Shown: positions 8,340 to 36,324 of the stretch, piece after piece
Layout: every line of letters starts with the position of its first letter
How positions within the stretch are numbered: the first letter of the stretch is position 1
Assembly: GCF_001194135.2 (NCBI RefSeq)
Contig: NC_068986.1
Span: 34,898,978-34,935,736 of the forward strand
Length of the DNA stretch: 36,759 nucleotides
From: Octopus bimaculoides
Taxonomy: Eukaryota
Direction: 5' to 3'
The notes under the pieces: model-generated
The model's database searches: none
What the model was told of the DNA's origin: nothing
What the model saw: the letters and a program-made list of their open reading frames with translations, nothing else
Translations under genes and position numbers: made by a program

Positions 8340-8502
8340 TGGCACGCATTAGATCGAGCTGAACAGGCCAAATACTATGAAATGGCTCGCAAGGAAAAAG
8401 AGTTACACATGCAACTATACCCTGGTTGGAGTGCACGAGACAACTATGCCTCACATACAAAAAAAAAGAAGAGGAAAAGAGAAACAACAGGTGAGGATGA
8501 AG
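8340..8502 (+). CDS. TCF: TCF/LEF (pangolin/TCF7L2-like) exon: C-terminal half of HMG box and basic tail/NLS
   Basis: Acceptor tttctctccag at 8339, then phase-0 [54 protein letters not shown]. This matches the TCF/LEF HMG signature WHALxRxEQAKYYELARKE...[11 protein letters not shown] followed by the basic tail. Donor AAG|gtaaaa after 8502, phase 1; an alternative donor lies after 8490. Confidence 0.96.
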
Positions 8503-9537
8503 GTAAAAACTCGACACTTAATTTCTTTTTCATCCTTCCAGAAAAAGACTTTAAGTGTTTATTTATTCCATCTTTTCCTTCTTTCACACCAATTAATTCT
8601 AACTTTCATCTTGTAGGTTTGGATGTAGCCATAGAAGTATGAGGAGAAGGCAAGAGAATGGATTTAAGCCTACAAACTTATATTGCTGCTGTTGTTGTTG
8701 TTTTTGTTTAATTAGCGAAAGTACAAACATTCACAAATTATAGCATGTTGTGTTTGCCTAAAGAACAAAATCATTGCAAGTCAGTTATCAATTGCTCCAA
8801 AGCAAATGTTTAATGTCTAAGACTACACCTTAAAGTCACTGAAAATTAATATTTTTCTACACATGTATCTATTATTGGGTAATCAGTTCGTGTATTGATT
8901 ACACAAAACGATACATTGGTAATCAGTCACAAAATCAATGCAGTGAAGCAACTGATAGTGATGGACCTGAAACAGATTTGTAGATAAATTTCTGTTGACT
9001 TGATGGCATCATTGGTGCTAGAGGTGAAGCTAGGGTTAGCTCTGTAGCTAAGGGATGCAAGAAGATTTAAGAATTGACATCTATTTTTCTCTTGTCAGTA
9101 ACAGAGTTCCATTCTCTGTAAGAAATAAAACAGATTTTTATACAGTCAAACACAACATAAGACAAGAATTAGCCAAATCAAATTGGGGGGAAAGAACAGG
9201 CAGTGAATGGAAAGGAATAAGCTGAGCGTGGTTTACTGGGTGAGCCAAATCAAACACTGAGACACTGCCTATGACTCTTCACAGGGCCTCCAAAATTGGT
9301 GGAAGGGAGACCGGGGAGAAAGGCATCCTCAGATTAGAGACCTGTCCCCAATGCTTGAAACACAGCAGTCTCTGCTAAAAGACATCCGAGGTACCAGGTG
9401 ATGGTGCCAAATTGAGTGACAAACTTAAGCCTACCACCCATGTAGGCCACAGTAGAATTTGTACTTGAAATGCAAGGAGTTGGAACAAATACCACAAGAT
9501 ATCTGATCTGTGTTCTTACAGTTTGCCAATCCCCTCC

Positions 9538-9625
9538 GCCCTGATTGGTACTTTTTTATCAACCCTGAAAGGACGAAAAGCAAAGCTGACCCTGACTGGA
9601 ATTGAGCTCAGAGTATTGAGTGTCA
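9538..9625 (-). mobile_element. Fragment of SINE family C (same family as 12349-13040)
   Basis: The reverse complement gtcagctttgcttttcgtcctttcagggttgataaaaaagtaccaatc matches ggtcaactttgcttttcatccttttggggtcaataaattaagtaccag at about 12671-12718. Confidence 0.7.
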
Positions 9626-9729
9626 GAACAAATACCACACAGCACTATCTCTGCTACTCTAACAGCTGCCAAGTCACAAGGGTGTTGACAGAATGACTGG
9701 TTCACAGTAGTATTGGCTGACGTGTACAA

Positions 9730-9962
9730 GAGAGATAGCCGTTGCCAGTACCGCCTGACTGGCCTTTGTGCCAGTGGCACGTAGAAGCACCCACTACACT
9801 CTCAGAGTGGTTGGCATTAGGAAGGGCATCCAGCTGTAGAAACTCTGCCAAATCAGATTGGAGCCTGGTGTAGCCATCTGGTCCACCAGTCTTCAGTCAA
9901 ATCGTCCAACCTATGCTAGTATGGAAAACGGACGTTAAACGACGATGATGATGACGGTGATG
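9730..9962 (+). mobile_element. 3' end of a retroposon with (GAT)n tail (RTE-like LINE tail or tail-sharing SINE, family B)
   Basis: gagtggttggcattaggaagggcatccagctgtagaaactctgcc...ggacgttaaacgacgatgatgatg is shared with 15775-15932. The RTE assignment is an inference from the short tandem-repeat tail. Confidence 0.8.
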
Positions 9963-11151
9963 TTTCAACATATAATATACATGGAGGATATATACTTGAT
10001 TTAAAGTTGTCATGAATTAATGGAGGCTGGTAACTGAAACAGAAGGAGAGTAATGAAAGTTTAAGATGAACTGGTTACTTCAGATCTGGAAAAGTGTTAA
10101 TCTTCATCAATAAGGTGACACAGCATTGTAAACTTCACTCAATCTTTCAGATAATAAAACAGATATCAAATATTATTGCTGTTCGTATAAATGATGTTGG
10201 GAAAACATTGCTTTTCAAGCATATAGGAATAAATAGTGGAGAAAAATCCAGTGAAGGTCCTTTGCCAACATAGGTTTTATATCAAATGAAGAATTTGTCA
10301 CCAAAATATAGAATTAATAAGCTTTGACTTATTAACCATGTCTTGATAACTTGGTTTCTACAGTAATTATTACACCAATTAAATATTGATTCTCAAGGCT
10401 TTCGAATAACACCCCCTGTTACCTTTGTATTCTGTTTTTGTCATTCCAATAATCATAGAATTAGAGAATTAACAAAATCATGGTATCTACATAAATCTAG
10501 TTTAGATCTTTCACAGCAAGCTTAGTTAAAGAAATGGAATTACTTGAAAAATTCAATTGGTAACAAGATCTAATTCTTGTTCCCTTTGATCTAGACACAA
10601 CCTGTTAACATCAATGCTGTCATCTCTTGAATTTACCAATTAAAGCAGTTCTTCAAAATTGGGATATTCTCAACAGTTTATTCTTGCTTCAAAATAGCCT
10701 TCCCAATAGACGAGTTCCCACAAATAGCGGTATTTTCGCTGTCAACTTGGCTACCAAAATTTAACATGTTTCTGCAGCATCAGAAACTTTATCATTTTAT
10801 TTTGTGTTTTAATTTTTTTTTTTTTTTTTAATTTCAATTTCAATTTTTTTAAAAATCTAATTTAAAATTCATTTAATTTTTGTTTTAGTTCAAATTAACC
10901 ACTTAACCATTCTTTATATGTTCTACAGTTGTCTGTGATGTCAAAGACCATTTTATCAGTCTTAGATTTGTGTTTTAATTTCTGTGTATATACATAAATG
11001 TTTTCTTGGTGCTGTCTATGCATGTATATTTGCATTTTTTTGTTTCTAAATCACATGCATACACATAGCATAAAGAGTCATTCTTTTCTTGTGTTTTGTA
11101 TGTGATTTTTTTTCTTTCTTGCTTGTTTATAATTTTTGTTTTGGTCTGGAG

Positions 11152-11193
11152 GAAGGGCTTATATCAATGGCCTTTGCACACTCTCCAAGACTA
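11152..11193 (+). CDS. Candidate 42-nt symmetric phase-1 cassette exon of TCF (GRAYINGLCTLSKT)
   Basis: U-rich AG-free zone at 11078-11149, GAG acceptor (uncommon), open phase-1 frame, donor CTA|gtaaga. Splice signals only, no homology recognised. Confidence 0.3.
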
Positions 11194-11550
11194 GTAAGAT
11201 TGACTCTTGGAATAGTTTAGATGTATGTGTTAATTACTACCAAAGGAAAAGGCAAAAAGGTTTCTACCAATTTCTTTAAAATAATTATTCTACTTTTCTA
11301 AGCTTAACATACTTTCCAGGGTTCCATAATAACTTCTTTTTTTTTTTATTTTAAAACTCGTTTCCCCTAATCTATATATTTACACATATATGTTTCCTCC
11401 TCCATGATGTTTTAAAGTTGTACAAATTTGTTTCATTTTTCACAGATTTATTTAATGTTGATAACCACTTTTATAAATGCAGTGTGCATTAACAATTTTT
11501 TTGTTTTTGTTTTGCTGACCATGGTATGTAATAAGTTTTGGTGGGGTGGG

Positions 11551-11720
11551 GAGAGACAACTCTGACTCTGATTGGCTGATGTATGGAGAAAGAAAGATTG
11601 ACAATTCTGACTTCTTGTTGGTTGATATATGTGGAAAGTGGGACAGCTAACTCTGTGATTGGTTGTTTGATATAAGGAGAAAGAGAGAGTGACAATCCTG
11701 GCTCTGGTTGGTTGATATTA
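11551..11720. repeat. Four degenerate tandem units of about 45 bp
   Basis: Units begin acaactctgac, acaattctgac, acagctaactc and acaatcctggc, each followed by (a/g)ttgg(c/t)tg...gatat...gaaag. Confidence 0.7.
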
Positions 11721-11979
11721 ATGTTTTATAAATATTGTCTGGACCAACACATTTCTTCTGATTTGTGTTTGATAGGGATTACTTTCTTAAAGCAGCAATG
11801 CAAATAAAGGGACAATATCATAGGTCTGGAAGTAAATATAAATTAAAGGAGACTAAGTTGTAAAAACAGGGAAATTACATAGCGACCTATCTCAATTTGT
11901 GGATGGATATATGGCAGTAACAACAATTTCATTCTAGACATGTATTTCATGACTAATGGTTAAGTGTTGGTTGTTGTTT

Positions 11980-12170
11980 AACCCCACCACAACTTTCTCT
12001 CACTCTTACTTCCTGTTTCTGCTGTGCCTGTAATCTCCCCGAGAACTACGTTAAGGGTACACGTGTCTGTGGAGTGCTCAGCCACTTGCACGTTAATTTC
12101 ACGAGCAGGCTGTTCCGTTGATCGGATCAACTGGAACCCTCGATGGAGTGCCAACAACAACAACAACAAC
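11980..12170 (+). mobile_element. 3' part of SINE family A with internal deletion and (AAC)n tail
   Basis: 12043-12091 is the exact 49-nt reverse complement of 5488-5536. It ends in gagtgccaacaacaacaacaacaac. Confidence 0.92.
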
Positions 12171-12348
12171 GTAAGATAAACAGTTGTTACTTACAAACAA
12201 GTGATTAAGGATGTGTAACAATCTGCTTTCACGATTGGAAAACTACTTCTGTTTTCTTATTGAAGACTTCTGAGTGGTCTGAAACACATTGTCACAGAAG
12301 AACTAATGTATAGCAGTGAGATATTTTTTTGTTATTGTTATATTATTA

Positions 12349-13040
12349 AGGTGATGAGCCGGTAGGATCATTAGTGTGTCAGACAAAATGCTAAGTGGTG
12401 TTTCTTTTGGATCTTTATATTTTGAATTCACATTCCACTGTGAGGAACTTTGTCTTTCATTCTTTTGGGATTGATAAATTAAGTACCAGCGAAACACTGG
12501 GGTTGATATAATTAACTGGTTCCCACCCTCACAAATCTGAGGCCTTGTGCCTCCAGTAGAAAGGATTATTATTATTATAAGGAGCCAAACTAGCAAAATC
12601 GTTAGCATGCTGGGAAAAATGCTTAGCAGCATTTCATCCATCTTTATGCTCTGAGTTCAAATTTCGCCAAGGTCAACTTTGCTTTTCATCCTTTTGGGGT
12701 CAATAAATTAAGTACCAGTGTAACACTGGGGTCGATTTAGTCAACTAGTCCCCTCTCCCCCAAAATTTCCGGCTTTGTGCTTATATTAGAAAGGATTATT
12801 AGTATTATTATTAAAGCGGTGAGCTGGCAGAATTGTTAGTGCACTGGATGAAATGCTTAGCGGAATATCGCCTCTGACTGTTCTGAATTCAAATTCTGCC
12901 AAGGTTGGCTTTGCATTTCATCCATTCGGGTTCACTAAATTAAGTACCAGTGAAATACTGGCGTTCTTGTAATTGACTAGCCCCCTCCCCCAGAATTTCA
13001 GGCCTTGTGCCTAAAGTAGAAAGGATTATTATTATTATTA
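12349..13040 (+). mobile_element. Three head-to-tail copies of an about 230-bp tRNA-derived SINE (family C), each ending gaaaggatt(att)n
   Basis: Units start near 12349, 12580 and 12814. All share gttag...aaatgct.ag, B-box-like g(a/g)ttcaaatt, the core aaattaagtaccag, ttgtgc...tagaaaggattatt and an ATT tail. Confidence 0.9.
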
Positions 13041-13082
13041 CACCCACCCACATATATATATTTATATTTATGTGGATTTAGG

Positions 13083-13378
13083 TGTAGGCACGTGAATTAT
13101 TTGGCTTATGATCATAAGGGTCATGAGTTCAATTCCCAGCAACATGTGCCTTTATTTCATGTTGCTCCAGTCCACTCAGCTGACAAAAATGAGTGCTACC
13201 TGTATTTCAAAGGGCTAGCCTTGTCACACTCTGTGTCACATTGAATCTCCTTGAGAACTATGTTAAGGGTAGGCATGCCTGTGTAGTACTCAGCCACTTG
13301 CACGGTAATTTCATGAACAGGCTGTTCCATTGATTGGTTTAACTGGAACCCTCATCGTTGTAACCAATAGAATGCCAG
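13083..13378 (+). mobile_element. Diverged SINE with a different head but the family A 3' region
   Basis: B-box-like gagttcaattcc near 13125, followed by gagaactatgttaagggt...cagccacttgcac...aactggaaccctc matching family A. Confidence 0.8.
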
Positions 13379-13389
13379 TATATGGAGTT

Positions 13390-13600
13390 AGTTGTATGTT
13401 AAAGCTTTAACAACACAGGTTATATGCTGTCAGTTGTGGTTGAGGTGATCTGTGGCCAGGAGTGTTCCAGCCATGACCTTCCCACCTTTCTCTCACGTTA
13501 CATGCCTAGGGCTACATTTTCTAATCTGCCCTTCTACATTAGAGATGGTAATGTGTAATTTGAGGGAGATTAGACTACTGTTTATTGCAGATTGATCCTG
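13390..13600 (+). mobile_element. Interspersed repeat fragment, related to 1800-2030
   Basis: Shares ttccagccatgacc and gtgtaatttgagggag with the copy at 1800-2030. Confidence 0.5.
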
Positions 13601-14989
13601 GTTTTTTAGAATAAGCACATCATATTCCTTGGATGTTGGAAAAGACATCTAAAGGGGTGGGCACTTGTCTACAAAGCACTGTCTCAAAAAATATTCCGTC
13701 TAACCCATGCCAGCATGGAAAAGCATATATATATAAAACAACTATTATTATTATTATTTTGATGATGATGATGAGTGATAGTTTAACAATGTTGCTAAAT
13801 AATGACATAAATATTATCTTTGTTACTCTTGAATGATTTTTTAAAAAAATGAAACCAAACTTTGGAAATATATTCTTCAGAATGAATTTTAATAGTCATT
13901 TTATATATTCCTCTAAGGAAAGTGAAGAAAAAAAACCCCCCAAAAAATCTGTTTTAGAAAATCTATTTCTTTATATCAATTTATAATACCCCTTAAGCAA
14001 GTATTTCGTATTTCTTCATTTTTGAGTTATTCATTCATTTTATCCTTTCTGAAACATAGGGAGGCAAAGAATGGAATTTTTATATATTTTTCCTAAAAAA
14101 AAAAAACATTCCAAAAAGGAAATATTCCCCTATTTTGAATGTTCAGTGAAAATGTATTATATTCTGCAAGATATTGTGTTCCTACTCACTTTCTACAATA
14201 TTGGCAATCTTATTATTCTTTTTTTACCTCTCTCTCTCTGTCTCTTTCTTTCTCTTTCCATTATCCCATCCTCTAAATCATCTATATCTTCAATATTTCA
14301 GTACAACCATTCCTTTATTATAGTAAATTAGTCAAGATTTATTTTAGTTCCTTCTCTTTCAGAAAGTGGTTGTCATTTTTCTTCTTCCCAATCCCACTAA
14401 AAATATATATATTTTCTCATATAGGTGACTAATATTGCTTTTTTTATATTATTATTATTATTATTATTATTATTATGTGCTCAAAACCATTCTCAATCAA
14501 TAATAATCAATACACCATTCAATTGTACTGAAATCACAAGATTAGTGTAAAAACATTTTTATTTTGTGGCTTACAGGTTGGGTTCATAACTCATAACATC
14601 TTCAACGGAATCCTCTTCCTGCTTTTTTGTTGTTACATTGAAAGCATTAATATATGTTTTATCTAATCATTCAAAACATGTACACTCACATGCATTCTCT
14701 CTCCAATTTTATTTGCAAATATCTGCTCCCTAAAACATGCTGCTTGCTTTAAAATGTTGATTGAATTACTTTGTTTATTTTATATCATCACAATATTTTA
14801 ACATTAGCGTTATTGATTACAAATTTCCCATGAGCCAATTACTAATTCATTCCACTTTCGATGGCAAAAATAACAGAAGATTGTTGCTTACTTGGTGCAA
14901 GAGGACTTCCGTTGAAGAACACTTGTTTTCTGCCAGTGTATACATCCTCTAGTGATATACATTGGCAAAAGTTGTAATGGTACATGGAT

Positions 14990-15146
14990 GCACGGGCTTC
15001 TTCACACACTTTCCATGTACTGGATTCCACTCACAAAGTATTTGTCAATCTGATGACATTTGTCCCAGGTGCTATGTCGTGAGATCAAACCAGAACCACA
15101 ATGGTTCTGAAGTGAACTTCTTAACCAAACAGCTATGCCTGCATTT
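14990..15146 (-). mobile_element. Diverged SINE head and central domain (family D)
   Basis: The reverse complement gcaggcatagctgtttggttaagaagttcac...cacctgggacaaatgtc...ttgtgagtgga...gaagaagccc resembles the segments at 16667, 26360 and 33846. It accounts for two spurious minus-strand ORFs. Confidence 0.6.
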
Positions 15147-15774
15147 CAGGTGTTTATTTAATTGTCTGCTGTGTTGGAAAGAAATTCACCATTATAAAGA
15201 TCCAGTGACTATGCATGTGCCAATGAAGAAGCATTTATGTTGTCATTTGACAATTTGATTCTCAAATTACACCCAACTCACTTAACCAAAAAAGAAAAAC
15301 AAAAAGGACATGTTGGATATGATCTGGCAGGGTGGTGAGTCAAAATGGTTATGGTTGGAATGCCTTCAATTATAGGTTTGTCAATCAAGGCTGGCCTCAC
15401 ACTAAACAACAACAACAACAACAACTAGATTCTACTGATTCTAGTGGGGCTGTGTTTTCTGAATGGAATGTAAAATGCTTTAATAACAAACTTATCTTGA
15501 AACGGTCTTCACATCAAAGCTGTCTCCTTTGAAACTTCCAGTATCAAATCAACTTAATCAATACCACCATTTCAACTACTCAAATATGTAACATTGGCCT
15601 TTTATTGGAACTACAGTTAAGTCATACCACATCCGTCACTGGTCTTATTTATTTAAAAGAAGCTTTAATCTTATGTCCCCTCTCTATGTTAGATCAAATC
15701 CCATCACTCTTCCTTCCACTATGGTAGCATAGGTAGAGTGGTGGCCTTCTTTCAAAAATTACATTTAATTTACA

Positions 15775-15932
15775 TCTCGGAGTGGTTGGCGTTAGGAAGG
15801 GCATCCACCTGTAGAAACTCTGCCAAATCAGGTTGGAGCCTGGTGTAGCCATTTGGTCCACCAGTCCTCAGTCAAATCATCCAACCCATGCTAGCATGGA
15901 AAGCGGACGTTAAACGATGATGATGATGATGA
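15775..15932 (+). mobile_element. 5'-truncated family B retroposon tail with (GAT)n
   Basis: Aligns nearly end to end with 9800-9957: ggagtggttggcgttaggaagggcatcc...gctagcatggaaagcggacgttaaacgatgatgat. Confidence 0.88.
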
Positions 15933-16666
15933 TTGTCAAAGTTGGGGATGTTTGAGATATATGTGTAATTTCACTATTAATTAATGAACTGTGAAGTGAA
16001 AAATAAATGCATTAAATGTTTAGAAGTATTCAGCTCATGATTATTTGGTTGTTTATTCAATTTTCCATGCTGGATAGTTCATTGTGTCCTTCAGCAAGAC
16101 ACTTTGTTTTTTGTTGCTACTCAACTATAAATAAGTACTCAGCTGGGTGCTGATGCAACTCCTCCTGCATCCGGCTGTCATACCATGGATATACCACTGA
16201 GTCATGGGTCAGGGAATCCAGGTGATTTTTATGTCGGCTTGTGACTGCAGAGTTACTTAAAACAATTAGCAAAACCATAATAGATGTTAGCATAGAATAT
16301 TCACTCACAAGTGATGGATGGCTGTACAAGTCTACTGAAAAATTCCAATTGGGAACAGAATAGATGTGACAATAGTTAGATCTCACAACTTCTGTATTAT
16401 ATGTAGGAACCATTTCAAGTGGAATATGTTAGTGATCTTATCAAAAGGTGAGACCATATGTAACATAATTGTTGACAAGCATATATAACACATTTCTTAT
16501 GAGATTAAACATTGTTGTAGTTATGTTATTGTTTCATTGTACTTCAATAAGTCAAGGCATATTTTTAATTACTCCAGTTTTGGGACTGGAAAGACTGTCT
16601 TTCCAACTCCATATTTGGATTGATAAATAAATGTCTTCATATACGTGAGCGAAAAATTATATAAGA

Positions 16667-17010
16667 TGCAGGCATGGCTTGGTATTATTAAGAATTCACT
16701 TTACTATGACATAGTTTTAAGGTTTGTTTCCACTGCGGGCAAGTGTTTTTAATTTATGCCTTGGACTCACCAAGGTTGAAGCTGTACAGAAGCATGTTGT
16801 GTATGTTTGTGGCTTGATATTGTTTACATGTTTTAAAACATAAAACAATGTCAACTTGTCTGTGCCTGCCATGAAAACATGTCCAGCCGTTGTGCTAAAG
16901 ACCAGGAGAACAAATAAAGAGTTGGTGACATGAAAGACATATGACTATAGAATACTATGTATCATCCAATCTATACCTGGTTGTAAATAAGCAAATGTAA
17001 GAACTACAAT
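16667..17010 (+). mobile_element. Old SINE family D copy with a decayed family B-like tail
   Basis: gatgcaggcatggct...ttaagaa...cgggcaagtgttt...caccaagg...gaagc, then gagttggtgacatgaaagacat...catccaatc. Confidence 0.5.
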
Positions 17011-20000
17011 GATATATGTCTGTTTGTAAAGAAATTATATTTACACCATTTAATTAGAACACAAATTAAATAAAGTAGTTCTTATTTGCTTGAGATTCAG
17101 ATGCAGGGGTATGAGTTCAGATTTTGCTCACATTGTAGAATATTACTCCATCAGTCAAGCAGATAGGTAACAGAGGCATGCAACAACCTATATTCCTTGT
17201 CCAGAGGGTCAATGTAAGAGCTGAAATGGTGAGGTTTGTACACAGTACCGTGTGATCTGTAGTTTAACTTCTCGACCATAGCTGCAATTACTCAAATTCG
17301 CCAAAAAAATATTTCATCCATATTGGTATGGTAAACTGTGGCCATAATTCCACCTAAGGTATGGAGAGAAAATTAGGGCACCAGCCCACTTTCTACTCTG
17401 GCTATCTTATAAAAGGAAATAATTAACGAACTTTTATATGCATTGTCCAATTGGAGACTGAATTAAACAAATGATCACTTTTGTCATTTTTTATAAATAC
17501 ATACTTAACTCTTAACATCCTGTACAACAATGAATTCACCCAGTAGTGTACGCGTCTCTCAATCCAGTACCACCTGGAACCCAAATCACAACACTCTTAT
17601 TTATATTTGTTTTAAAGGAAGTTATTAACTCCCTAATCAAAGAGAGAAAACTTTAATCTCTCCCTATGTCATTTATTGACATTCTGTGACGTTTGCTATT
17701 AAAATTGACACAAATATTGCCGAACCTTTTTTTTTTCTGTTTTGTTTTTACCCTGCCAAAGTTTTATCAAAACTTTCATAAATATGTGGGTATGTTGTTC
17801 CTGGAGGAATTAACTCAACTTATCTATAAATTTCATAATAGAAATGGTCAAAGAGAAAAATTCTTTTTCTGATGTTTGCATGTTCACATTTGTTACTAAT
17901 TGCATTTAATTTATTACTAACATCTTTCTTTCATTGACTTTTTTTTTATTATCTTTATTATTGTATCTGTTTCTTAATTTTTATTTTGTAATAAATTAGA
18001 ACACACATTATTTTTAGCACAAATGGTTATGTACATTTAAAAAAAAAAACTAAGTGTTCTGCAATACTGCCAATTTTCACAATAACCTGACCACCAATAA
18101 ATACACTATAAGCATTTAAATAAACAAGACTATTTTTAAGTATTTTCTTCTCAGTCCATTACAGGACTGAGCTTTTGACTTTGAAAAATTTCAACAGGAT
18201 GTTAAGAGTTAGATACTAAAACACACACATACAATCAACTAATCATAAATTTCACATACATTTTCCCATTTAACATAACACCTTGAATGTTTCTTGGTCT
18301 TGTAATGCGAGTAACTTCTACTATTAATTCATGCTACTTATTCGCCCTTTGTATTCCTCATCTATTTTCATTGCACATTCATACTAGTGTTGTCAACTTA
18401 TATTTGCTAATACTTTTCATGTCGACTTTTGTCAGTCAACTCATTCTGTGTCTAGTCATTCTTCTAAATAGACATTGTCTATCTAACTCATTCCTCTCCA
18501 ATAGGTATAAATGAATACTGTGCATTTTACTATTCATATTTCACTACCAATGATATCTCACATTCTGCATGACTACCTTTAAGAGCCCGCTATTTGGTTG
18601 TAATAACGTGTGTATGTGTTAAGTGTGAAAAGCAGTTGTTTTTGGTGATGTGAAATAAATTCAGTATTTTATAGATGAAGCTAAAACCTAACCATGTAGG
18701 GTAATAATAAACCCACATGTAACATAATTCTTTGCCAAGAAAACAATAACGGCTATTTCACTCACAATTTTTGTTTTTAATGGAAATCCTAGAATTATAC
18801 AGATTTCTTGTATTTTCTTTTTACAGGTGTATCTTCCTCTATGTTGCTCTCCCCATTATCCACATTCCTTCCACTTTTACTTCTCTTACTCTTTCTCATT
18901 CTTGCTCTCTCTCTCTGTCTTTTCCCTTCTCAATTCATTTTTTCCCCTACTTTCTTTCCCCCCTTCCTGTTTATTATATTCCATATATTCATTCCCTATT
19001 ATTCCCGGTGTGTGGTGGCTGCTGTTCAATGGTACATGGTTTGGTGGGAAGGGAAGTGATAGTAAATATTTTTGCATAAACTCCTGTGTTTTCATGTACC
19101 TTTGTTAGCTCTTACACCTTAAGATCTTTCTAATGCCCTAATTCAATTCTTTGTCTTATTTCAGCTAAAGCCAGATTACCATGGTATTTCAATGATGTTA
19201 CCACAGGTTAGTACCATTTCTTATTTTTGCACACTAAGGATTTTAATGACTGAGTACTTATTTATACATATATATATATATATATANNNNNNNNNNNNNN
19301 NNNNNNNNNNNNNNNNNNNNNNNNNNNNNNNNNNNNNNNNNNNNNNNNNNNNNNNNNNNNNNNNNNNNNNNNNNNNNNNNNNTATATATATGCCTACCTA
19401 GCTTTCTTTCTGTCTTTGGTTTATGAATTCTATATAATTTTTAGTTAAAGATGTTTGTTTTTTTATTTAAGTATTACAGTTAGTTTCGGCTATTATTTTT
19501 ATTATTATTATTTTTTTTTCATTGTAGATGTTTTTAAAGCTTGCTCCACGTCACATTAAGGAAGACTTGTCTTAGATACTGGAGTTATTCTAATAAAATA
19601 TCTTTACTTAAAGTTAGTACCATAAGAACTTTCCATGTGTCTGACTGAAATGGAAAAAAATAGCGAAATTTAAAAAACGAGAAAACATGAATCACAATAG
19701 AATTGTAGATGTAAAACAACCATTTTTTCCTTAAAATTCTCTACAGACTTTCCTGTCATTTTTTCTAAAAGGATAACATATTTATTTACTTCTTGGCAGA
19801 CATAGTTTTTGCTTTAAATCCATACGGTTTGATAACCTAATACTATGCCTGGGTATTTTTTTAAATATATCTTTTATTTGAGAAGTAGTCATTATTCCAT
19901 TGCTTAATTCTAATACAGAAACTGTTATCTGTTGATTATCATGTTTTTTGTATTGGTTTAGTGAGCTTGTCTTCAAATGTGTTTCTTTCCATGACTCAAT

Positions 20001-21972: not shown

Positions 21973-22044
21973 ATTCTATAACTGCTGAAGGAAGCTCTGG
22001 CGGGGATTCATATCAGTGGGAAAGGACGAGGCCATCTATTATTG
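21973..22044 (+). CDS. Candidate 72-nt symmetric phase-1 cassette exon of TCF (DSITAEGSSGGDSYQWERTRPSII)
   Basis: Acceptor ttttcttatgtgcttcag and donor TTG|gtatat. Only the phase-1 frame is open (the other two frames hit TAA or TGA within five codons). It is a locally GC-richer, non-repetitive island in an AT-rich intron. Confidence 0.45.

Positions 22045-26042: not shown

Positions 26043-26085
<43 letters not shown>
26043..26085. repeat. (ATT)n microsatellite
   Basis: Direct reading of the sequence. Confidence 0.95.
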
Positions 26086-26088
<3 letters not shown>

Positions 26089-26740: not shown

Positions 26741-27274
26741 GTTGGTGAAATATCAGCTGAGTTCATTTGTCTGGCGATGTAGAAAATCTAACGGTTTGTA
26801 CTCTTGCTTTTCAATGAAGAGAAGAAAACTAATGAGCGAAAGCCCAAATTGGATTTTGGCATTTTGCAAACTTTCCTTTTGATTTGCTGGTGCCTAGGAA
26901 GATCCTTTCCAATGTCTTTAAATTCCAGACTACCTCTGTGTGTGTGTGTGTGTATTGTACAATTNNNNNNNNNNNNNNNNNNNNNNNNNNNNNNNNNNNN
27001 NNNNNNNNNNNNNNNNNNNNNNNNNNNNNNNNNNNNNNNNNNNNNNNNNNNNNNNNNNNNNNNNNNNNNNNNNNNNNNNNNNNNNNNNNNNNNNNNNNNN
27101 NNNNNNNNNNNNNNNNNNNNNNNNNNNNNNNNNNNNNNNNNNNNNNNNNNNNNNNNNNNNNNNNNNNNNNNNNNNNNNNNNNNNNNNNNNNNNNNNNNNN
27201 NNNNNNNNNNNNNNNNNNNNNNNNNNNNNNNNNNNNNNNNNNNNNNNNNNNNNNNNNNNNNNNNNNNNNNNNNN

Positions 27275-27475
27275 CCACCACTTGACAGCCAGTGTTGGGG
27301 GTGTTTACATGCCTGTGGTTTAGCAGTTTTGGCAAAAAAAAGGACTGATATAATAAGTACCAGGCTTTTAAAAGAATAATAAGTGGTGGGGTTGATTTGT
27401 TTGGCTAAAATTCTTTGAGGTAGTGCCCCGGCATGTCTACAGGCTAATGACTGACATAAGTAAAAGATAAGATAT
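27275..27475 (+). mobile_element. 3' half of a SINE about 150 nt upstream of the C-clamp exon
   Basis: ccaccacttgacagccagtgttg...ataagtaccagg...ggggttgatttg...aatgactga...agtaaaagataaga. The aagtaccag...ggggttgat core is shared with family C. Confidence 0.6.
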
Positions 27476-27621
27476 ATATACATATATATTAAATCCTAAA
27501 TTCTTTTTTAAACATACATACTCTTTATCTCTCTATGTCTCTCATTTACTCTTTTCACACCTCTCTCTATTCTCTCTCTTGTCTGCATGCTTTTCCTTAT
27601 TCTGACTCATTCTGATTCCAG

Positions 27622-27694
27622 AATGCTCAAACCCAAAGAAATGCAGAGCTAGATTTGGTCTTGACCAACAGAATCAGTGGTGTAAACCGTGCAG
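27622..27694 (+). CDS. TCF: TCF exon encoding first half of C-clamp (CRARF exon), 73 nt, phase 1 to phase 2
   Basis: Branch-like ctgac at 27602-27606, acceptor attccag, translation (E)[23 protein letters not shown](R), donor CAG|gtaggg. It has the same motif and 73-nt length as I recall for vertebrate TCF7L2 CRARF/CRALF exons. It is too short to appear in the ORF track. Confidence 0.97.
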
Positions 27695-28573
27695 GTAGGG
27701 AATATTAAAAAAAAAAGAAAAGAAAAAAGAAAAAATGTTTAAATAAATATATATATATATATATATAAATATATATGTGTATTTGCATACATGTATGTTA
27801 ATATATATATATATATATATACATATATATATTGTGTGTGTGTGTGNNNNNNNNNNNNNNNNNNNNNNNNNNNNNNNNNNNNNNNNNNNNNNNNNNNNNN
27901 NNNNNNNNNNNNNNNNNNNNNNNNNNNNNNNNNNNNNNNNNNNNNNNNNNNNNNNNNNNNNNNNNNNNNNNNNNNNNNNNNNNNNNNNNNNNNNNNNNNN
28001 NNNNNNNNNNNNNNNNNNNNNNNNNNNNNNNNNNNNNNNNNNNNNNNNNNNNNNNNNNNNNNNNNNNNNNNNNNNNNNNNNNNNNNNNNNNNNNNNNNNN
28101 NNNNNNNNNNNNNNNNNNNCTCCCCTACCTCTTTCTTTGCTGAGACTATTAATAGCAGTAGTTACATACATATGTATGTATATATATATATATATATATA
28201 TAGTCACACACACACATATATATGTATGTATATATTATGGTGATTACTGTTAATTCTTATACTTTTCCTTTTCTTTCTTTTTGTACATTATTGAGATATT
28301 TTAAGATAATCAAAAATTTCCTTATTTGAATTTAAAAAAAAAAAAAAAGCAATATATTTCTTTATATATATATATATATATATATCTACATATATATCTC
28401 CGCATATCTATTGGCCACAGAAAAGAGATCCTGTCTTGCAAATTAAACGGATAAATTATTCCAGTATTGCGATTTGAAGTAGGTTTTCATGACATGTTTG
28501 TCTGCTTCTGTTTATTTCATTGTCTTACCAAGTCGTTCAACTTTTCTGCAATGGCCATCTTGTCTCGTTTCAG

Positions 28574-28637
28574 ATCAATGCATGAAAAGTGTGATCAAAC
28601 TGCTGATTTAGAAACGAAAATCTCCACGGAGGTATAA
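28574..28637 (+). CDS. Candidate alternative exon after the CRARF exon giving a truncated C-clamp (R-SMHEKCDQTADLETKISTEV-stop)
   Basis: Acceptor tcttgtctcgtttcag. The phase-2 frame is open for 20 codons to TAA at 28635-28637. Donor candidates GAG|gtataa (after 28631) and AAG|gtatcc (after 28644). Confidence 0.4.
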
Positions 28638-30163
28638 CATTAAGGTATCCTCGTTGACCTCTCCGCAGCATGCTCCTTGGCCAATGTAATGCTTAAATCT
28701 TCTACATCCTCGAAAAAGTCATACATTAAGGTGTCAGCTTTGCATGTTACGATATCTCATAGGGGTCTGGGGATATATAAGCTGGTATACCCACCGATAT
28801 TTTTTCCACCCTGTCTTTTTTTACCACCCCATCCCACTCCCCCGAAAACTCTGTGTCCCTTCCCCCCTACTTTCAATTTTTCTGCCACTTCCCACGAAAC
28901 CCCCCATCCAAATGTGGTCATGCTTGTTACGTTGATTTGGTTGGTTGTCCTTTTGCTGCCTGCCAGGGGCACCTTGCTTTGTTGTGTTGTATCTTCGAAC
29001 TGCTTGTCGTTGTAGCCAATCAAAATGCTTGTTTCAGTGTTCCCAAGCATGAAACTCTTTGGCCTGCTGCCTTCGTGGTTTTTATAGGTGTATGTCTTTA
29101 TGCGCAAGCCAATGGTATCATACCTAACTGTCTGTAACCTGTGTTTATTTTTTTGGTTTGTTTGTACAAAATTATATCTTTTATTGTTTTTTGTCTTTTT
29201 TTTTGTATTGTTCTACCCTTACCCCACCCTTTTTTTTTTATACATTTCCTATTTTTCCATATTTCCCACGCCATTCTTCTTATAACATCAATATCTTAAT
29301 ATTTTAAACAATCTTTATTGATTCTATTCCATTTGCTGTCTACTTCTTGGAATTTTGGAATCTGTTAGGGTTTTTTATTTTATGTTTTGTTACAATTTTT
29401 AAAAAAAAGAAACTTTTTTTTTGTCATGGTTTTTTTGCCGTTGCAAGTAAAATGAATAATTCCCTGTGATTCATCTCTAAAGGCTGGTAACAAGATAACT
29501 TTCGCTGTTGAGTTAAACACTCCTTGTAGCTTGCTGCCCATCTATACTTATGCATTCTTGTATATTCGCACACACACACACACAATTACAGCTCCTTTAC
29601 ATAACATTGTTATTGATATATTTCTCCTTTTTTAAGATTCAAACACTAAACCCCAAGCAAGATATCACCAAACTCGGCTGTTATGATATCCTGCAAATTC
29701 CAATCATTATACCTCCTCTTCCATTACTACTACTATTAGTGACTTCTTTTTACTATGTTGATATTAGTATTTCTAGTTCATGAAGTTTTCTTTCGTTCGT
29801 AAGACATTTGTAGAAGTCATTCACCGTTTCTGTTTTAATATGGGAGTGACATTCTTCTAGTAATCAAATGATGCCGAACCAAGGAGAGACAATTCAAAAT
29901 TTTTGTCTAAGTCGATATGAGACATTATACTGAAAGTCTGTTGCAGTTTATTGCCGTTATTATTATTATTATCATCATCATCATTATCATAACCATTATT
30001 TTTTTTTAAACGAACCATTGATTTCTAATTAATATTCATTTGGAAGTAGGAAGGAAAAGTAGCAGGGATGGGGTGGATGGATAAAAAAAAAAAATATCGA
30101 AGTCTGCCTTGTCTAACAAAGCTGACATGTTGTTAATTCTGTTGCTCCTGAAATGTGTCTTAG

Positions 30164-30179
30164 GTCTCACAAGAGACAA
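30164..30179 (+). CDS. Candidate 16-nt microexon (phase 2 to phase 0, R-SHKRQ)
   Basis: gctgac at 30121, acceptor tgtgtcttag, exon GTCTCACAAGAGACAA, donor CAA|gtatgc. Signals this short can occur by chance. Confidence 0.2.
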
Positions 30180-30974
30180 GTATGCCTCACTGTCCAATAT
30201 TTCACTCATCCTTTTCCTAGCAACCTACCCTAGCAGAAAAGCTGTGCCTGTCTCGTTCAGCCATTCTATCCAATTCATCCACCGGATATATCCATATATA
30301 TATTTATTTTTCTCTCATTGTTTCATTTCACAATTATGCTTCACTGGTCCTCCTCCTTCTTTTCTTCTTCTTCCTCCTCCTCCTCCTCCTCCTTCTCTTC
30401 TTGTGTTTTCAGTTTTAAAAGAAAGAATATAACAAAAAAATACAAAACAAACAGACGGGGGTGGGGGAACACGGTTTTTCCTCCAGTTTTTCTCAGTTGT
30501 GTGTGTTTCCTTCATTCCCACTTTTTCTTTCCCTACCCCCCACGTCTTATCTGGTTTTGTTCCTTTCTGTGCATGACAAATAAATAAATAAACCCTTAAA
30601 AAAAAAATTAAATTTGACAAACTAATCTTCTCCTCATCTCCCATCTCCTCACTTCCTTTCTTACTGTGATGTTTTGATCATTTTTAAGCACCATTTTTTT
30701 TTTTTTTTTACCATTTTTTTTTCTGGATGGTTTATATTACGATTGGTTCATTTATTTATTTATTTATTTCTAGTCACCTTTAGTATGTATGTATGTCCAT
30801 ATGTATGTACGTACATAACATTTTTGTATGTATGTACATATATATATATCTGTGTATGTATGTCTCTGTGAGTGAGTGCCTATCTGTCTGCGTGTGCGGC
30901 ATGCACATTTTTAATAGAAAGAGGCTTGGATATTTTTAACAGCTAACATCGTTGTCCTGTCTTTGTTTATATCC

Positions 30975-31021
<47 letters not shown>

Positions 31022-31040
31022 ATCATCATCATCATCATCA
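30975..31040. repeat. (ATT)n(ATC)n compound microsatellite
   Basis: Direct reading of the sequence. Confidence 0.95.
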
Positions 31041-31302
31041 TTCCCTCACTCCCCTTTTCCTTATTTTCCTCTCTATATATTTTTGGTTCTAAGACTATTC
31101 TGCCTGTTTCTCATTGATATTTTCTCTTCTTCTTTTTTTTTTTCTTCCAAGTTTCCTCGCCATTTTCCACCCTATGGTAATGCCAAGAAATTCTTCAGCT
31201 CTCTTTTTGATTGACCACATCCCCAATTCTCAAATGGAAACAAGAAATAAATAAAAAATCTTTTAAATAACAAAAAAAATACAACAAAAAAAACATTCCT
31301 TT

Positions 31303-32293
31303 NNNNNNNNNNNNNNNNNNNNNNNNNNNNNNNNNNNNNNNNNNNNNNNNNNNNNNNNNNNNNNNNNNNNNNNNNNNNNNNNNNNNNNNNNNNNNNNNNN
31401 NNNNNNNNNNNNNNNNNNNNNNNNNNNNNNNNNNNNNNNNNNNNNNNNNNNNNNNNNNNNNNNNNNNNNNNNNNNNNNNNNNNNNNNNNNNNNNNNNNNN
31501 NNNNNNNNNNNNNNNNNNNNNNNNNNNNNNNNNNNNNNNNNNNNNNNNNNNNNNNNNNNNNNNNNNNNNNNNNNNNNNNNNNNNNNNNNNNNNNNNNNNN
31601 NNNNNNNNNNNNNNNNNNNNNNNNNNNNNNNNNNNNNNNNNNNNNNNNNNNNNNNNNNNNNNNNNNNNNNNNNNNNNNNNNNNNNNNNNNNNNNNNNNNN
31701 NNNNNNNNNNNNNNNNNNNNNNNNNNNNNNNNNNNNNNNNNNNNNNNNNNNNNNNNNNNNNNNNNNNNNNNNNNNNNNNNNNNNNNNNNNNNNNNNNNNN
31801 NNNNNNNNNNNNNNNNNNNNNNNNNNNNNNNNNNNNNNNNNNNNNNNNNNNNNNNNNNNNNNNNNNNNNNNNNNNNNNNNNNNNNNNNNNNNNNNNNNNN
31901 NNNNNNNNNNNNNNNNNNNNNNNNNNNNNNNNNNNNNNNNNNNNNNNNNNNNNNNNNNNNNNNNNNNNNNNNNNNNNNNNNNNNNNNNNNNNNNNNNNNN
32001 NNNNNNNNNNNNNNNNNNNNNNNNNNNNNNNNNNNNNNNNNNNNNNNNNNNNNNNNNNNNNNNNNNNNNNNNNNNNNNNNNNNNNNNNNNNNNNNNNNNN
32101 NNNNNNNNNNNNNNNNNNNNNNNNNNNNNNNNNNNNNNNNNNNNNNNNNNNNNNNNNNNNNNNNNNNNNNNNNNNNNNNNNNNNNNNNNNNNNNNNNNNN
32201 NNNNNNNNNNNNNNNNNNNNNNNNNNNNNNNNNNNNNNNNNNNNNNNNNNNNNNNNNNNNNNNNNNNNNNNNNNNNNNNNNNNNNNNNNNNNN
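31303..32293. other. Largest assembly gap; other gaps at 2569-2848, 19287-19382, 24128-24460, 26965-27274, 27847-28119 and 33392-33414
   Basis: Runs of N, mostly flanked by microsatellites or SINEs. Confidence 0.99.
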
Positions 32294-32410
32294 TATACAC
32301 ACACACATATATACATGTGTATGTATACACACCCATTTTACACATATACATACCTCTTACACAAAATATCCCTGATTTTTAAAAATTTTAAACGTTTAAC
32401 TTCACTACTT

Positions 32411-32455
<45 letters not shown>

Positions 32456-33414
32456 TTATTTTCCACTTAACTGAGGCATTTCTACCATGGCCAGCTGTTG
32501 TGTGAGAGTGAAAACAGGATTTCACCCTTTCAGGGGACAAGTTTATACTTACTAGCTAATTTTGAACCATCTCAGAGAAATGTCTAATTCTGACCTTTGA
32601 CTGAGAGTCGTTTGTAAAATAAGCAAACTAGAAATAACTTTTATATCAGACTATGGTCACACTTCTCTAGCAGTGTTCATCTATGTAAAAGCTTATGTAA
32701 GCACCTTGTTTCACTCATTTTCACACATAGCAAAATTTTCTGTTAACCTTTTTTTTTTATATTATTGTTATTATTATTATTATTGTTGTTGTTGTTGTTG
32801 TTGTTATTAATCAAAATTTTCTACATGTTATCTTATTGAATGCCTCCACTTTTAAACCAAATAGGCAAGTGTGAGTGTTGTTAATAAACAGACACACTCT
32901 TCAATTTCAATACATAGAACCCTAATACAATTTGCCCAGTTTTAGCACATGCACAACATACTCTACAATATATGTATGTATATATATATACCATTATAAA
33001 TAGAATACACATTACAGTTATAATTATTTTACACTGCACTTCTCTAAACACTTGACAAATATTCATTACAGTCGATATGAACACCACTAGAAAACAACAC
33101 AGGTCCATTATGAAGACAGACAAAATTTTAACTGATGTAATGATATTAATGATAATCATAACATTAATAGTGTCATACAAAATAATTTACATGATCAATA
33201 AGTTACAAAATAGGAAATTAAGTATAATTATTCTTTTAAAAAATTATGCATTTGTAGATTTGTTTTATTATAATGAATGATTTTGATGTTATTTTGATTT
33301 TGATTTTAGTCTTGTTTTTGGTAAATTTTGTCTTCAGCTTTTGACACTGAGAAAAACTACAACTTGTGTGTCTGTATATGTATATGTGTGTNNNNNNNNN
33401 NNNNNNNNNNNNNN

Positions 33415-33454
<40 letters not shown>

Positions 33455-33845
33455 CAGTATTTTGTTCAAGGAAGCTCTCTTTAAAGACATTATGTTAAAA
33501 GACACAGTATACTTCAAAACTAGGCAAAATGAAATCACCAGAGAAGTGAACAAGCACAACAGATATTAATGTTTCACAGCTTTTGCTGCTCATCTGTATT
33601 ATGTGCACAACCCATTTCTGAAACAAAATTGAAATAACAAACCAGAAGCATATGCAAGTAGTGTAAAAAAATCTCTTTGCCAATATGCAATAAGTCTGTA
33701 CAAGGAGAACAAAATCCAAATTTTGGTTAGATGCAGCTCAATGAAGGATACCAGTTGTATGACAGTAACACTCACTTGCTTACAACTATTATGTGAGGTC
33801 AAGGCAAGGAAACAATAACACCCACATACACATATATATATATAC

Positions 33846-33998
33846 AATGGGCTTCTTTCAGTTTCTATCTACTAAAATACATTCACAAGACTTCAGTCAG
33901 TCCAGGGCTCTAGTAGAAGACATTTGCCCAAGATGTCATGCAGTGGGGCTGAACCAAAAGCTATGTATTTAAGAAGCAAACTTCTTAACACATAGCTA
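33846..33998 (-). mobile_element. SINE family D head and central fragment
   Basis: Plus-strand gggcttctttcagtttct...gaagacatttgcccaagatgtc...gctgaacc...aaacttcttaacacatagc is the reverse complement of the family D pattern. Confidence 0.7.
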
Positions 33999-35793
33999 GT
34001 GTTTATCATTATTATGCTGGTGTTTGCAGAATAAATTAACATGAAATTCTGATGAAAGATTTCAACTTGGACCATTTTATAATAGAAAATTTGTGCCTGA
34101 GGACCAAGGTTAGTCTTAGGTAGTTTGGTATCAAAATGTTAATTTGAAGCTGCAGAACTACTGCATGCATAGGACATAATATTTATATTTTCCCCCAAAA
34201 AGTTCCTTTGTTATATTAACTCATGTACATGACATCAAGCTAAAGGCAGTAAAACAGAAATTTTTGAGTTTGTAAAATAACTAGAGTAATTCCATTTTAT
34301 AATACATAGCAAACTTGGCAAAAACAGATATTTGAAAGAAAATGATATTGAATAAATAATTAAGAATTGAGAAATTTTGCCGGAGGTTATATGAAAATAG
34401 AATTTCGAAATAAACATTTGAATAAAGCAAAACAACAGCGTGTGTCAGTTTAACTCAAGGGGCATAACTCCTGCTTCTAATGGTGTTTTCTGTAAATATT
34501 TAAAAAAATTAATTGTGTGTGTGTGTGTTTGTTTGTACTGCATATTATGTTTAATACTAATAATATTTGCTGAAACAAGAACAGAAATTCTGACAGTGAG
34601 TCTGTTAGCTCTGATAATAGTAGCTTCTAAGTTCGGCAGAAAGGAAAATAGTCTTACATTTTATTCAGAATTACCTCCCATGTTTTCTAGCTGCAATTAT
34701 GGATATTCCGAATATTTTCCCTACCGTTGGATATGTATTAGAGCATTCGTTGCACGTGCGCACACACACACACACACACACAAAACTGAAGATGTTTTTT
34801 CCTTTTTTTTTTCTTTTTCAGATTCATTTGCAAATCTTTTTTTTTTTAGTGACTATTGTTATTATTATTACTTTGACACATCAATAAACAATTGCGGCAG
34901 TTTTTTTTTTTTTTTTTTTTTTCATACATAGAAACATTTATTTGGAGTTTTTTTTCCATTAAAAAAAAAAAAAACTCTTCATTGATGTTGACGTCATCAT
35001 CATCAACATTAACCAATATAATTAACAAATGCTCATTTAGAAAGTGAGGTCTTTTTTTTGGTGGGGGGGGGGAAATAAGTTATATCTTATTTTATGGCCA
35101 TAGTTTAACTTTTTAGTTATTATATTCCTAATTAAATACACAGCCTATTTGTTTTTAATTTATTTGTAAAGTAAAGATTTTGAGGGATTTAGTAAAATAC
35201 CAAATTTTTTCTTTAATAAGCTGGTGTTTTGAACTCTCACACACATTATTCAGTCATACACACACACACACACACAGAGGAAATATTTCTTTAATTAACT
35301 AGTTACTGTACTATCATTTATGGTGACTATCAGATCATAGTACATAGATACATATTAAACTGCTTTTCTGTACACACACAAACACACAGGTAAACACATA
35401 GGTGCAAAACAAGGTGGTAAAAATAGTACTAGAATACCAAAGGTAGAGCAATATAGTTTTATTAAAGCTGAAAAAAATCACAACTCTATATATATATACC
35501 TCATACATTTATAATTCACTATCAACATCATTCTAACAGCTGTCATTGTGCAACCTTAAGGATTCTTCAAGCCAAAATCAAGACTTGCATTTCATTTCCT
35601 GTTGGAACTTATTCCATTCAAAAGAACACAAATACCTTGGAACTGGAACTTTTCATTTTACTTTTCTTATCAATGTGAAACTTTTACTCAATGCTGTTAT
35701 TTTAATATTTCTTGAGTTCAGTGTCAATTAAATCAATTGTGCAAGTCTATATCTGATAATGTTTCCTGATATCTTTATCAGTCTTACACACAC

Positions 35794-35832
<39 letters not shown>

Positions 35833-35863
35833 ATTTACATTTTTGTTTCTGTCTTCGTTACAG

Positions 35864-36158
35864 ACGAAAGAAGAAGTGTATTAGATTCCTGACTGGTGAA
35901 GATGGAACAGCCAGCAACACTGATGGGGAGGATGGCAATGATGATGTTATGAGTGATGGCATCACCACAATGACAACAACTGCAGATTCTATGAATGAAA
36001 GTGACTGTAATTTAGAGAGCCCTAACCTGTCACCTCACAGCGAACACATAAAAGATCAGCAGCAACAGAAATTCATTCAAAATATTAAGGTTGAATCCAC
36101 AGACTCTGCTTATTCTCCACCACCAGTGCCTCGTTCCTGCTCTTCACCAAACACCTAG
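35864..36158 (+). CDS. TCF: TCF last coding exon: second half of C-clamp (RRKKKCIRF) and acidic/Ser-Pro C-terminal tail
   Basis: Pyrimidine tract ttttgtttctgtcttcgttacag, then (R)RKKKCIRFLTGEDGTASNTDGEDGNDDVMSDG...SPPPVPRSCSSPNT and TAG at 36156-36158. This completes the four-cysteine C-clamp. Confidence 0.94.
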
Positions 36159-36324
36159 GGAAAGCCACATTTCCAATTCCAAAAACCATCGATTACAGGT
36201 AGCATAATATTTCACTATAACCCCTGCCAAGCTGCTGGCAGGGGAATATGAAATAGATAAGGACATTAAAAGGATTTACCAAACATAACCAGACAAAGAA
36301 AATAGAGATGGCATGTATTATATA

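Follow-up and report, generated by a model that had tools for sequence, protein, structure and literature searches.

The stretch of DNA analysed here, which we call the window, comprises 36,759 nucleotides (nt) of Octopus bimaculoides (contig NC_068986.1) and holds the 3' part of the single TCF/pangolin gene of the Wnt pathway, namely its last six coding exons (Table 1). These exons encode the second half of the high mobility group (HMG) box, the basic tail with the nuclear localization signal (NLS), a linker and the C-clamp, and we examine here how alternative splicing changes this last element. The C-clamp is a motif of about 30 residues with four conserved cysteines, made up of CRARF and RKKKCIR(F/Y) (PMC3896468). 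The gene extends over about 385 kb in O. sinensis, and the window does not reach the N-terminal exons; nor did tblastn of the window find the first half of the HMG box.

Regarding membership among TCF/LEF proteins, the HMG exon matched positions 39-69 of the PF00505 profile with 22 bits, a value below the cut-off for this second-half fragment, and a full-length orthologue with the identical HMG exon (P0271) scored 78.7 bits. The basic tail KKKKRKRE ends the exon at 8340-8502, directly after the HMG box. The C-clamp, assembled from the exon at 27622-27694 and the sequence from 35864 onward, is assigned by motif, its zinc and Helper-site binding being predicted; the corresponding family PF27556 is listed in precomputed annotations and was not reported by the local Pfam scan.

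The window contains seven runs of N (2569-2848, 19287-19382, 24128-24460, 26965-27274, 27847-28119, 31303-32293 and 33392-33414), of which six are intronic and one lies upstream of the first exon. As none of them touches a coding exon, no reading frame is broken by the gaps. From the 5' side, the exon at 19165 is followed by one gap, the exon at 21973 by two, the exon at 27622 by one and the exon at 28574 by two before the last exon. This exon order and all the frames that cross gaps agree with the proteins annotated on the O. sinensis and O. vulgaris records (120 and 135 Mb), therefore the gaps affect intron lengths only, and an unannotated exon could sit in one of them. Rfam and tRNA scans of the window found nothing.

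Table 1. Features of the TCF/pangolin gene in the window (a slash marks a splice site)
Feature	Position	Strand	Remarks
HMG second half and basic tail/NLS exon (WHALDRAEQ...)	8340..8502	+	Phase 0 in, phase 1 out; acceptor ctccag/TGGCAC
12-nt extension between the two donors	8491..8502	+	CAG/GTGAGGATGAAG/GTAAAA; adds GEDE to the linker
Intronic hairpin	8513..8559	+	47 nt, 10 nt downstream of the distal donor (8502); 8+8 bp arms, 9-nt loop
42-nt exon	19165..19206	+	Phase 1 to 1; tttcag/CTAAAG...ACCACAG/gttagt; encodes (A)KARLPWYFNDVTT (AKARLPWYFNDVTT)
72-nt symmetric cassette	21973..22044	+	Phase 1 to 1; encodes DSITAEGSSGGDSYQWERTRPSII; lengthens the HMG-to-C-clamp linker
CRARF exon, 73 nt	27622..27694	+	Phase 1 to 2; ccag/AATGCT...GTGCAG/gtaggg; first three C-clamp cysteines
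S cassette, 58 nt	28574..28631	+	Frame-shifting; encodes SMHEKCDQTADLETKISTE; sets the last exon to phase 0
Last exon, coding part	35864..36158	+	Read in three frames

A phase-2 intron splits the C-clamp after ...PC(R), so that its CRARF half stands on a small exon of its own, which is the conserved exon XII/XIV structure (PMC9303524). The CRARF exon is equivalent to exon XII of Torres-Aguila et al., has the same 73 nt in Candidula and is skipped in two annotated isoforms of O. sinensis, X10 and X11. The last exon can be read in three frames, which we call E, S and M. The E frame completes the C-clamp and gives RRKKKCIRFLTGEDG...SSPNT (RRKKKCIRF...), ending at a TAG at 36156-36158. In the S frame, which follows the 58-nt cassette, the last exon gives TKEEVY and a TAG at 35882-35884, and in the M frame, in which a phase-1 exon is joined to position 35864, it gives (D)ERRSVLDS and a TGA at 35890-35892. 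When the S cassette is read through its donor (GAG/GTA TAA), the product ends in ...STEV, with the TAA at 28635-28637. All the frame-shift stops are thus in the last exon, and the ...STEV stop is in the cassette, which then serves as the terminal exon. Regarding a second version of the CRARF exon, of the CRARF or CRALF type, tblastn of the window found one CRARF exon only and the annotated cephalopod isoforms contain no other; a further copy could conceivably lie in a gap.

Annotated proteins of cephalopods end in these same tails. A chimeric query of 424 amino acids, which joined a gastropod N-terminus, the C-terminus of the window and the S and M tails, reached full-length isoforms of O. sinensis (X1-X11, XP_036359958-69), O. 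vulgaris (eight models, CAI9724126-33), O. bimaculoides (XP_052824414.1 and XP_014780407.1), Sepia pharaonis, Doryteuthis pealeii and Argonauta hians. In O. sinensis, X1-X8 are E-like. The tail ...WCKPCR/SMHEKCDQTADLETKISTE/TKEEVY marks the S-like isoforms, namely X9, the two RefSeq proteins of O. bimaculoides and two models of O. vulgaris, and five of the eight O. vulgaris models end in ...STEV by read-through of the cassette donor. The M-like isoforms X10 and X11 end in ...PSII/DERRSVLDS (...PSIIDERRSVLDS), identical to the product obtained by splicing the window in silico; in them the CRARF exon is skipped, the last exon is frame-shifted and the C-clamp is absent.

The exons and junctions of the window are those of the cephalopod models in RefSeq and ENA. 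When we spliced the window in silico, the C-termini matched X2, X4, X6 and X8 (E), P0266 and P0269 (S), P0150 and P0265 (S with read-through) and X10 and X11 (M), and the S cassette was 100% identical to X9, to XP_052824414.1 and to the O. vulgaris models. The sole mismatch was a D instead of an E in HIKDQQQQ, in the E-like tails, between the window and the proteins of O. sinensis and O. vulgaris; this D is shared with the cluster member P0263, which also agrees with the O. bimaculoides RefSeq proteins in the SEDA residue. The public octopus annotations therefore already hold these isoforms, named only as transcription factor 7-like 2 or pangolin isoform Xn and with no statement on the C-clamp, and our literature search found no paper describing TCF isoforms of molluscs or cephalopods.

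Assembled RNA contains both kinds of short tail. Three Logan contigs from three runs (L013-L015) join ...FNDVNT to the last exon and continue as GERKSALDS and a stop, that is, cuttlefish mRNA has the last exon spliced straight onto the 42-nt exon. Two of them (L013 and L014) end in ...GATGTTAACACGG/GCGAAAGAAAAAGTGCATTAGATTCCTGA, and the third (L015) has the same M junction and covers the last exon completely; in the E frame, that exon is identical to Sepia pharaonis TCF7L2. Regarding the S type, four bivalve-like RNA contigs from four runs (L008-L011) carry an S cassette between the CRARF exon and the last exon, about 64 nt long in L008. The last exon is read there in the other frame, while an E-frame open reading frame (ORF) of 205-206 amino acids is still open downstream, and L008 and L011 extend past the cassette into the last exon. 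In two spliced fragments of invertebrate TCFs (P0031 and P0034) the CRARF exon is followed by S[FL]NEQSCDQ[IM]SDIK...EEEKMH and a stop, not by RRKKKC, and the S isoform of an oyster (P0280) is also present in Logan assemblies. The contigs L008-L011, the gene models and the Candidula gene thus share extra exon sequence after the CRARF exon, a frame shift and a clamp of three cysteines.

In order to know how widely these tails occur, we classified 390 retrieved proteins by tail type. Homologous S-type tails were found among bivalves in oysters, mussels, scallops (SMHEQSCDHDQTADIKPTISTE/KKKEMY and a stop) and venerid, mactrid and dreissenid clams, and among the other molluscs in abalone, Littorina, Babylonia, Nucella, Batillaria, Aplysia, Elysia, Candidula and Octopus. 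The Batillaria gene model reads ...WCKPCR/SLHEKCDQSAAELETQ..., and that of Candidula ends in .../SLHERSDQPVVETDQNHFVLVK/AKEEVHPL and a stop; in the Candidula genome the 73-nt CRARF exon is followed by a 67-nt cassette (tttcag/ATCTTTACATGAACG...AAG/gtactg) and then by the last exon. The three cassette lengths that could be measured, 58, 64 and 67 nt, all leave a remainder of one when divided by three. Outside the molluscs, similar cassettes were seen in the brachiopod Lingula (DVHDKESEQC.../PKEEVHPL...) and the nemertean Lineus (SYVHENSSEH...). Judging from this similarity, the S cassette appears to be ancestral within Lophotrochozoa and the toggle between E and S types to be ancient there. Proteins of the M type were found only in cephalopods.

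Within the window, the S cassette can be told from its surroundings when phase and acceptor are fixed. It ranked at the top of the 172 phase-correct, AG-anchored ORFs of its intron, with a score of 34 against 23 for the next, and it was also the best of 996 on the whole forward strand. However, in a plain local alignment to all six frames of the window, the bivalve-like S tail scored 31, not significant beside a background of 35. A profile search with the CRARF exon and the S cassette returned only short genomic ORFs around CRARF exons.

A three-cysteine tail of another kind was observed in arthropods. It reads WCKPC/S...(Q/P)(E/P)PTYVNL and a stop in a louse, in a Drosophila species and in a JGI source (P0021), where it stands beside an E form with the same N-terminus; the TCF of an amphipod has the same WCKPC/SP... 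start. These observations were made on the proteins P0002, P0021, P0035, P0255, P0006 and P0018.

Between the basic tail and the CRARF exon lie two linker exons. The 42-nt exon was matched by tblastn at 19164-19205, is present in all the annotated cephalopod isoforms, and splicing it in silico agrees with the annotated proteins. The initial annotation, which was made from the window sequence alone, had overlooked it and taken a direct junction from 8502 to 27622 as the default, and this junction is not annotated. The 72-nt cassette is included in O. sinensis X1-X5 and X9-X11 and X6-X8, P0162 of O. vulgaris and Sepia RNA contigs lack it. Both exons were found in cephalopod proteins only, therefore they are convergent with the vertebrate cassette at the same position.

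The initial annotation had also proposed two symmetric cassettes, at 11152 and 21973, and two exons that would yield S-like tails, at 28574 and 30164. In each pair one stood: the exons at 21973 and 28574 are translated identically in annotated Octopus proteins. We rejected the candidate at 11152, which has a GAG acceptor, and the 16-nt microexon at 30164, as neither has a homologue, both are absent from about 25 annotated cephalopod isoforms and both are at chance level. By simple splice-site criteria there are 52 open, symmetric phase-1 pseudo-exons in 8503-27621 and 21 open pseudo-exons with a length of 1 mod 3 in 27695-35863. Splice-site motifs alone do not discriminate real exons here.

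The exon at 8340-8502 is one of two mutually exclusive HMG/NLS exons, variant B of the pair, and is 100% identical to that of O. sinensis X2, X4, X6, X8, X10 and X11 and to O. vulgaris proteins. Its two GT donors lie 12 nt apart (CAG/gtgagg after 8490 and AAG/gtaaaa after 8502), and both leave phase 1. Both are used in annotated pairs (X8/X6, X4/X2, X11/X10 and Sepia P0268/P0273) and in the Sepia RNA contigs P0277/P0276, with the products RETT/A and RETTGEDE/A in octopus and REVA/A and REVAGENK/A in Sepia, and both GT dinucleotides are kept in the contigs L001 and L006. The other exon of the pair encodes WHALTKAEQ...SEDT(GMNN), that is WHALTKAEQAKYYDMACKEKDLHMQ...KKKIKRGKQQSED[TA](GMNN), has a 12-nt alternative donor of its own, and occurs in X1, X3, X5, X7 and X9 and in the two RefSeq proteins of O. 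bimaculoides. It was not found in the window, where only the exon at 8340 matched, and sits upstream of position 1 or in the gap at 2569-2848. The louse protein P0002 and the model P0185 concatenate two versions of the second-half HMG exon, which suggests mutually exclusive exons there too. On the reverse strand, at 12009-12077, we noted a weak HMG-like tblastn match with an internal stop (LHRHVYP, stop, RSSRGDYRHSRNRK; E about 0.4-0.8), most likely due to chance.

The intron that follows the distal donor contains a hairpin. Its layout is nearly perfect (ACACTTAA TT TCTTTTTC, loop ATCCTTCCA, GAAAAAGA CT TTAAGTGT), its minimum free energy is -17.2 kcal/mol (z = -7.06), and in 8513-8560 the Sepia-like genomic contig L006 is identical at 43 of 48 nt (90%), compared with 85% in the exon and 42-48% in the flanking intron. 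No covariation was found in the hairpin. We consider it a candidate regulator of the donor choice or of the mutually exclusive exons. In another octopod (contigs L001-L005, runs SRR11869384-94), identity to window 7067-9135 is 86-89% across the intron. Since L001 has a deletion of one nt right after the 8502 donor, which changes the frame, read-through into the intron is not coding at this point, and we rejected a read-through form of the kind known from Platynereis.

Taking these data together, the octopus TCF very probably has a C-clamp that is full, reduced to three cysteines or absent, depending on alternative splicing downstream of the HMG box. Four independent choices would act there. 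The alternative donor (8490 or 8502) would alter the length of the linker between the HMG box with its basic tail and the C-clamp, and so would the 72-nt cassette, giving together a gain of 0, 4, 24 or 28 residues. Joining the CRARF exon straight to the last exon would give the complete four-cysteine C-clamp of the E type. The addition of the 58-nt cassette would set the last exon to phase 0 and end the protein six codons later, with three cysteines and without the RKKKC motif (S type); in some models termination falls inside the read-through cassette, in ...STEV. Finally, skipping of the CRARF exon would put the last exon in its third frame and give DERRSVLDS with no C-clamp (M type). Of this scheme, the exons with their phases and stops are established here, and each isoform exists in annotations or RNA contigs. 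As the frame-shift stops are in the last exon and the ...STEV stop is in a terminal cassette, the short mRNAs should escape nonsense-mediated decay (NMD) and be translated.

The core of the initial annotation is thus borne out. It had placed the exon at 8340 with its donors at 8490 and 8502, the C-clamp divided between the 73-nt exon and the last exon, and the DERRSVLDS tail after skipping, and we recovered all of them. Its proposal, E-, M- and S-like tails from one TCF gene of an invertebrate, agrees with the annotated isoforms, the in-silico splicing and the cuttlefish and bivalve-like RNA contigs. It had missed the mutually exclusive HMG/NLS exon and the terminal use of the S exon.

Regarding the function of these tails, the four C-clamp cysteines are known to bind one Zn2+ and to be required for Helper-site binding (PMC3896468), and the M and S isoforms of TCF4 bind HMG sites and fail to activate the Cdx1 and Axin2 promoters (PMC2847248). 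By analogy with fly and vertebrate TCFs, only the E type would have the four cysteines for zinc and Helper-site binding, and the S and M types would be confined to HMG sites, the Wnt targets under their control forming a different or weaker set. More speculatively, a change of 4, 24 or 28 residues in the linker could set how much spacing is tolerated from the HMG site to the Helper site.

Several points weigh against this reading. The octopus isoforms are predicted gene models, and the difference in function between them is extrapolated from flies and mammals. The M type is seen only in the O. sinensis models and the Sepia contigs, not in the other molluscs sampled, and the position of its stop is explained by the coding constraint on RRKKKCIRF, therefore M could be low-level skipping. 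The models ending in ...STEV may be retained-intron artefacts, as no AATAAA or ATTAAA follows the cassette until about 30579, some 1.9 kb downstream. A rival reading is that noise in splicing or artefacts of annotation account for the short isoforms, that the E form alone is functional, and that the exon at 28574 and the skipping of the CRARF exon have no role. For it speak the predicted status of the octopus models, the forced position of the M stop, the lack of annotated M forms outside cephalopods and the abundance of splice-like pseudo-exons (52 and 21 by chance). We nevertheless regard it as improbable, because the S and M junctions both occur in independent RNA assemblies and the cassette peptide is conserved from octopus to scallop, Batillaria and oyster, with similar forms in Lingula and Lineus. 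Its lengths are all 1 mod 3, and such similarity across mollusc classes would be unexpected for a neutral intron.

The cassette could also be a device of unproductive splicing that lowers the amount of E-type TCF without making a functional S protein, since it brings a frame shift and an early stop, and the last exon contributes only six residues to the S tail. However, with the stop at 35882-35884 in the last exon, or in a terminal read-through exon, the exon-junction rule does not make this mRNA a target of NMD. Furthermore, octopus, Candidula and L008 differ by synonymous changes (TCA/TCT for Ser, GAT/GAC for Asp, CAA/CAG for Gln), and amino-acid conservation through such changes points to selection on the peptide, so this explanation too seems unlikely to us. 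We give somewhat more weight, although still well short of even chances, to the possibility that intronic polyadenylation makes the S exon, for the most part, an alternative terminal exon. The majority of the O. vulgaris models end in ...STEV, Haliotis models end in ...STDV and Mytilus models in ...SPEVQ, scallop models also read through, and in the window the stop follows the donor within two codons. On the other hand, the distance to the first polyadenylation signal argues against it, the S exon is an internal cassette in X9, in the O. bimaculoides models and in two O. vulgaris models, and L008 and L011 continue from the cassette into the last exon. The two modes may coexist, and their proteins are nearly alike. 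We retain the reading in which splicing makes the C-clamp full, three-cysteine or absent.

This arrangement resembles that of vertebrate TCF7L2 (Weise et al. 2010, PMC2847248; Torres-Aguila et al. 2022, PMC9303524) in several respects. There too the C-clamp is split between a CRARF exon of about 25 residues and a last exon starting with RKKKCIR; the E form joins the CRARF exon to the last exon in frame, the M form lacks the CRARF exon and has the last exon frame-shifted, and the S form has three cysteines and extra exon sequence that shifts the frame, all the stops being in the last exon. The stretch from the NLS exon to the CRARF exon likewise contains one or more alternative exons. However, TCF7L2 has duplicated CRARF/CRALF exons and octopus only the one CRARF exon; its linker exons of 42 and 72 nt were found in cephalopod proteins only; a CtBP-type motif was not noticed in the octopus E tail, in a reading by eye with no formal scan; and vertebrates have four paralogues, whereas octopus has a single TCF gene. 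The initial annotation had allowed that the architecture could be ancestral or convergent: the S cassette appears ancestral among lophotrochozoans, but no similarity tying it to a vertebrate exon was evident in comparison with the vertebrate S-type tails among the hits, and the linker exons are convergent.

Vertebrate TCF7 (TCF1), with its isoforms B, C, D and E, is comparable as well: the skipping of the CRARF exon (XII) shifts the frame of the last exon and removes the C-clamp, and isoform C keeps the CRARF half only (PMC9303524). TCF7 uses alternative acceptors in the last exon, whereas octopus and other molluscs use a separate cassette of 58-67 nt. A close invertebrate case is Pdu-Tcf of Platynereis dumerilii (X1-X8; Zidek et al. 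2018, PMC5996498), which is also a single spiralian gene with C-clamp(+) and C-clamp(-) or shortened forms, C-terminal splicing and alternative HMG exons. In Platynereis the C-clamp(-) form arises from a retained intron after the basic tail, and the length of the clamp depends on alternative sites in the CRARF exon (PMC5996498). In octopus, by contrast, it is the skipping of an exon, or a dedicated cassette, that yields the short forms, and the read-through after 8502 is not conserved in frame.

The passages of the literature cited here treat the C-clamp as constitutive in invertebrate TCFs and the isoforms without it as a vertebrate innovation (PMC9303524; PMC4267635); in the first of these works the sampling was of deuterostomes and the innovation was listed as potential. 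The cephalopod isoforms contradict this. The novelty is modest and, in practice, limited: RefSeq already contains the isoforms, which are annotated but apparently undescribed, and work on Platynereis had established the principle in 2018. The comparative result added here is the spread of the S cassette across lophotrochozoans. It is conceivable, although we hold it only tentatively, that the toggle between a full and a three-cysteine C-clamp predates vertebrates and is ancestral to bilaterians or at least to protostomes. If so, the alternatively spliced C-clamp would be an ancient single-gene route to varied Wnt target selection rather than a vertebrate innovation, and the toggle would consist of alternative exon sequence at the conserved phase-2 intron that splits the clamp. 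The lophotrochozoan cassette, the arthropod ...WCKPC/S...PTYVNL tail and the vertebrate S and C tails would then descend from one splice node or have exploited it repeatedly.

Thus, in cephalopods one TCF gene yields tails of the E, S and M types, and its S cassette is kept throughout the molluscs sampled, with brachiopods and nemerteans probably sharing it. This result qualifies what has been inferred on how TCF diversity evolved, and it offers a single-gene system, free of paralogue redundancy, in which to ask how toggling of the C-clamp affects the choice of Wnt targets.

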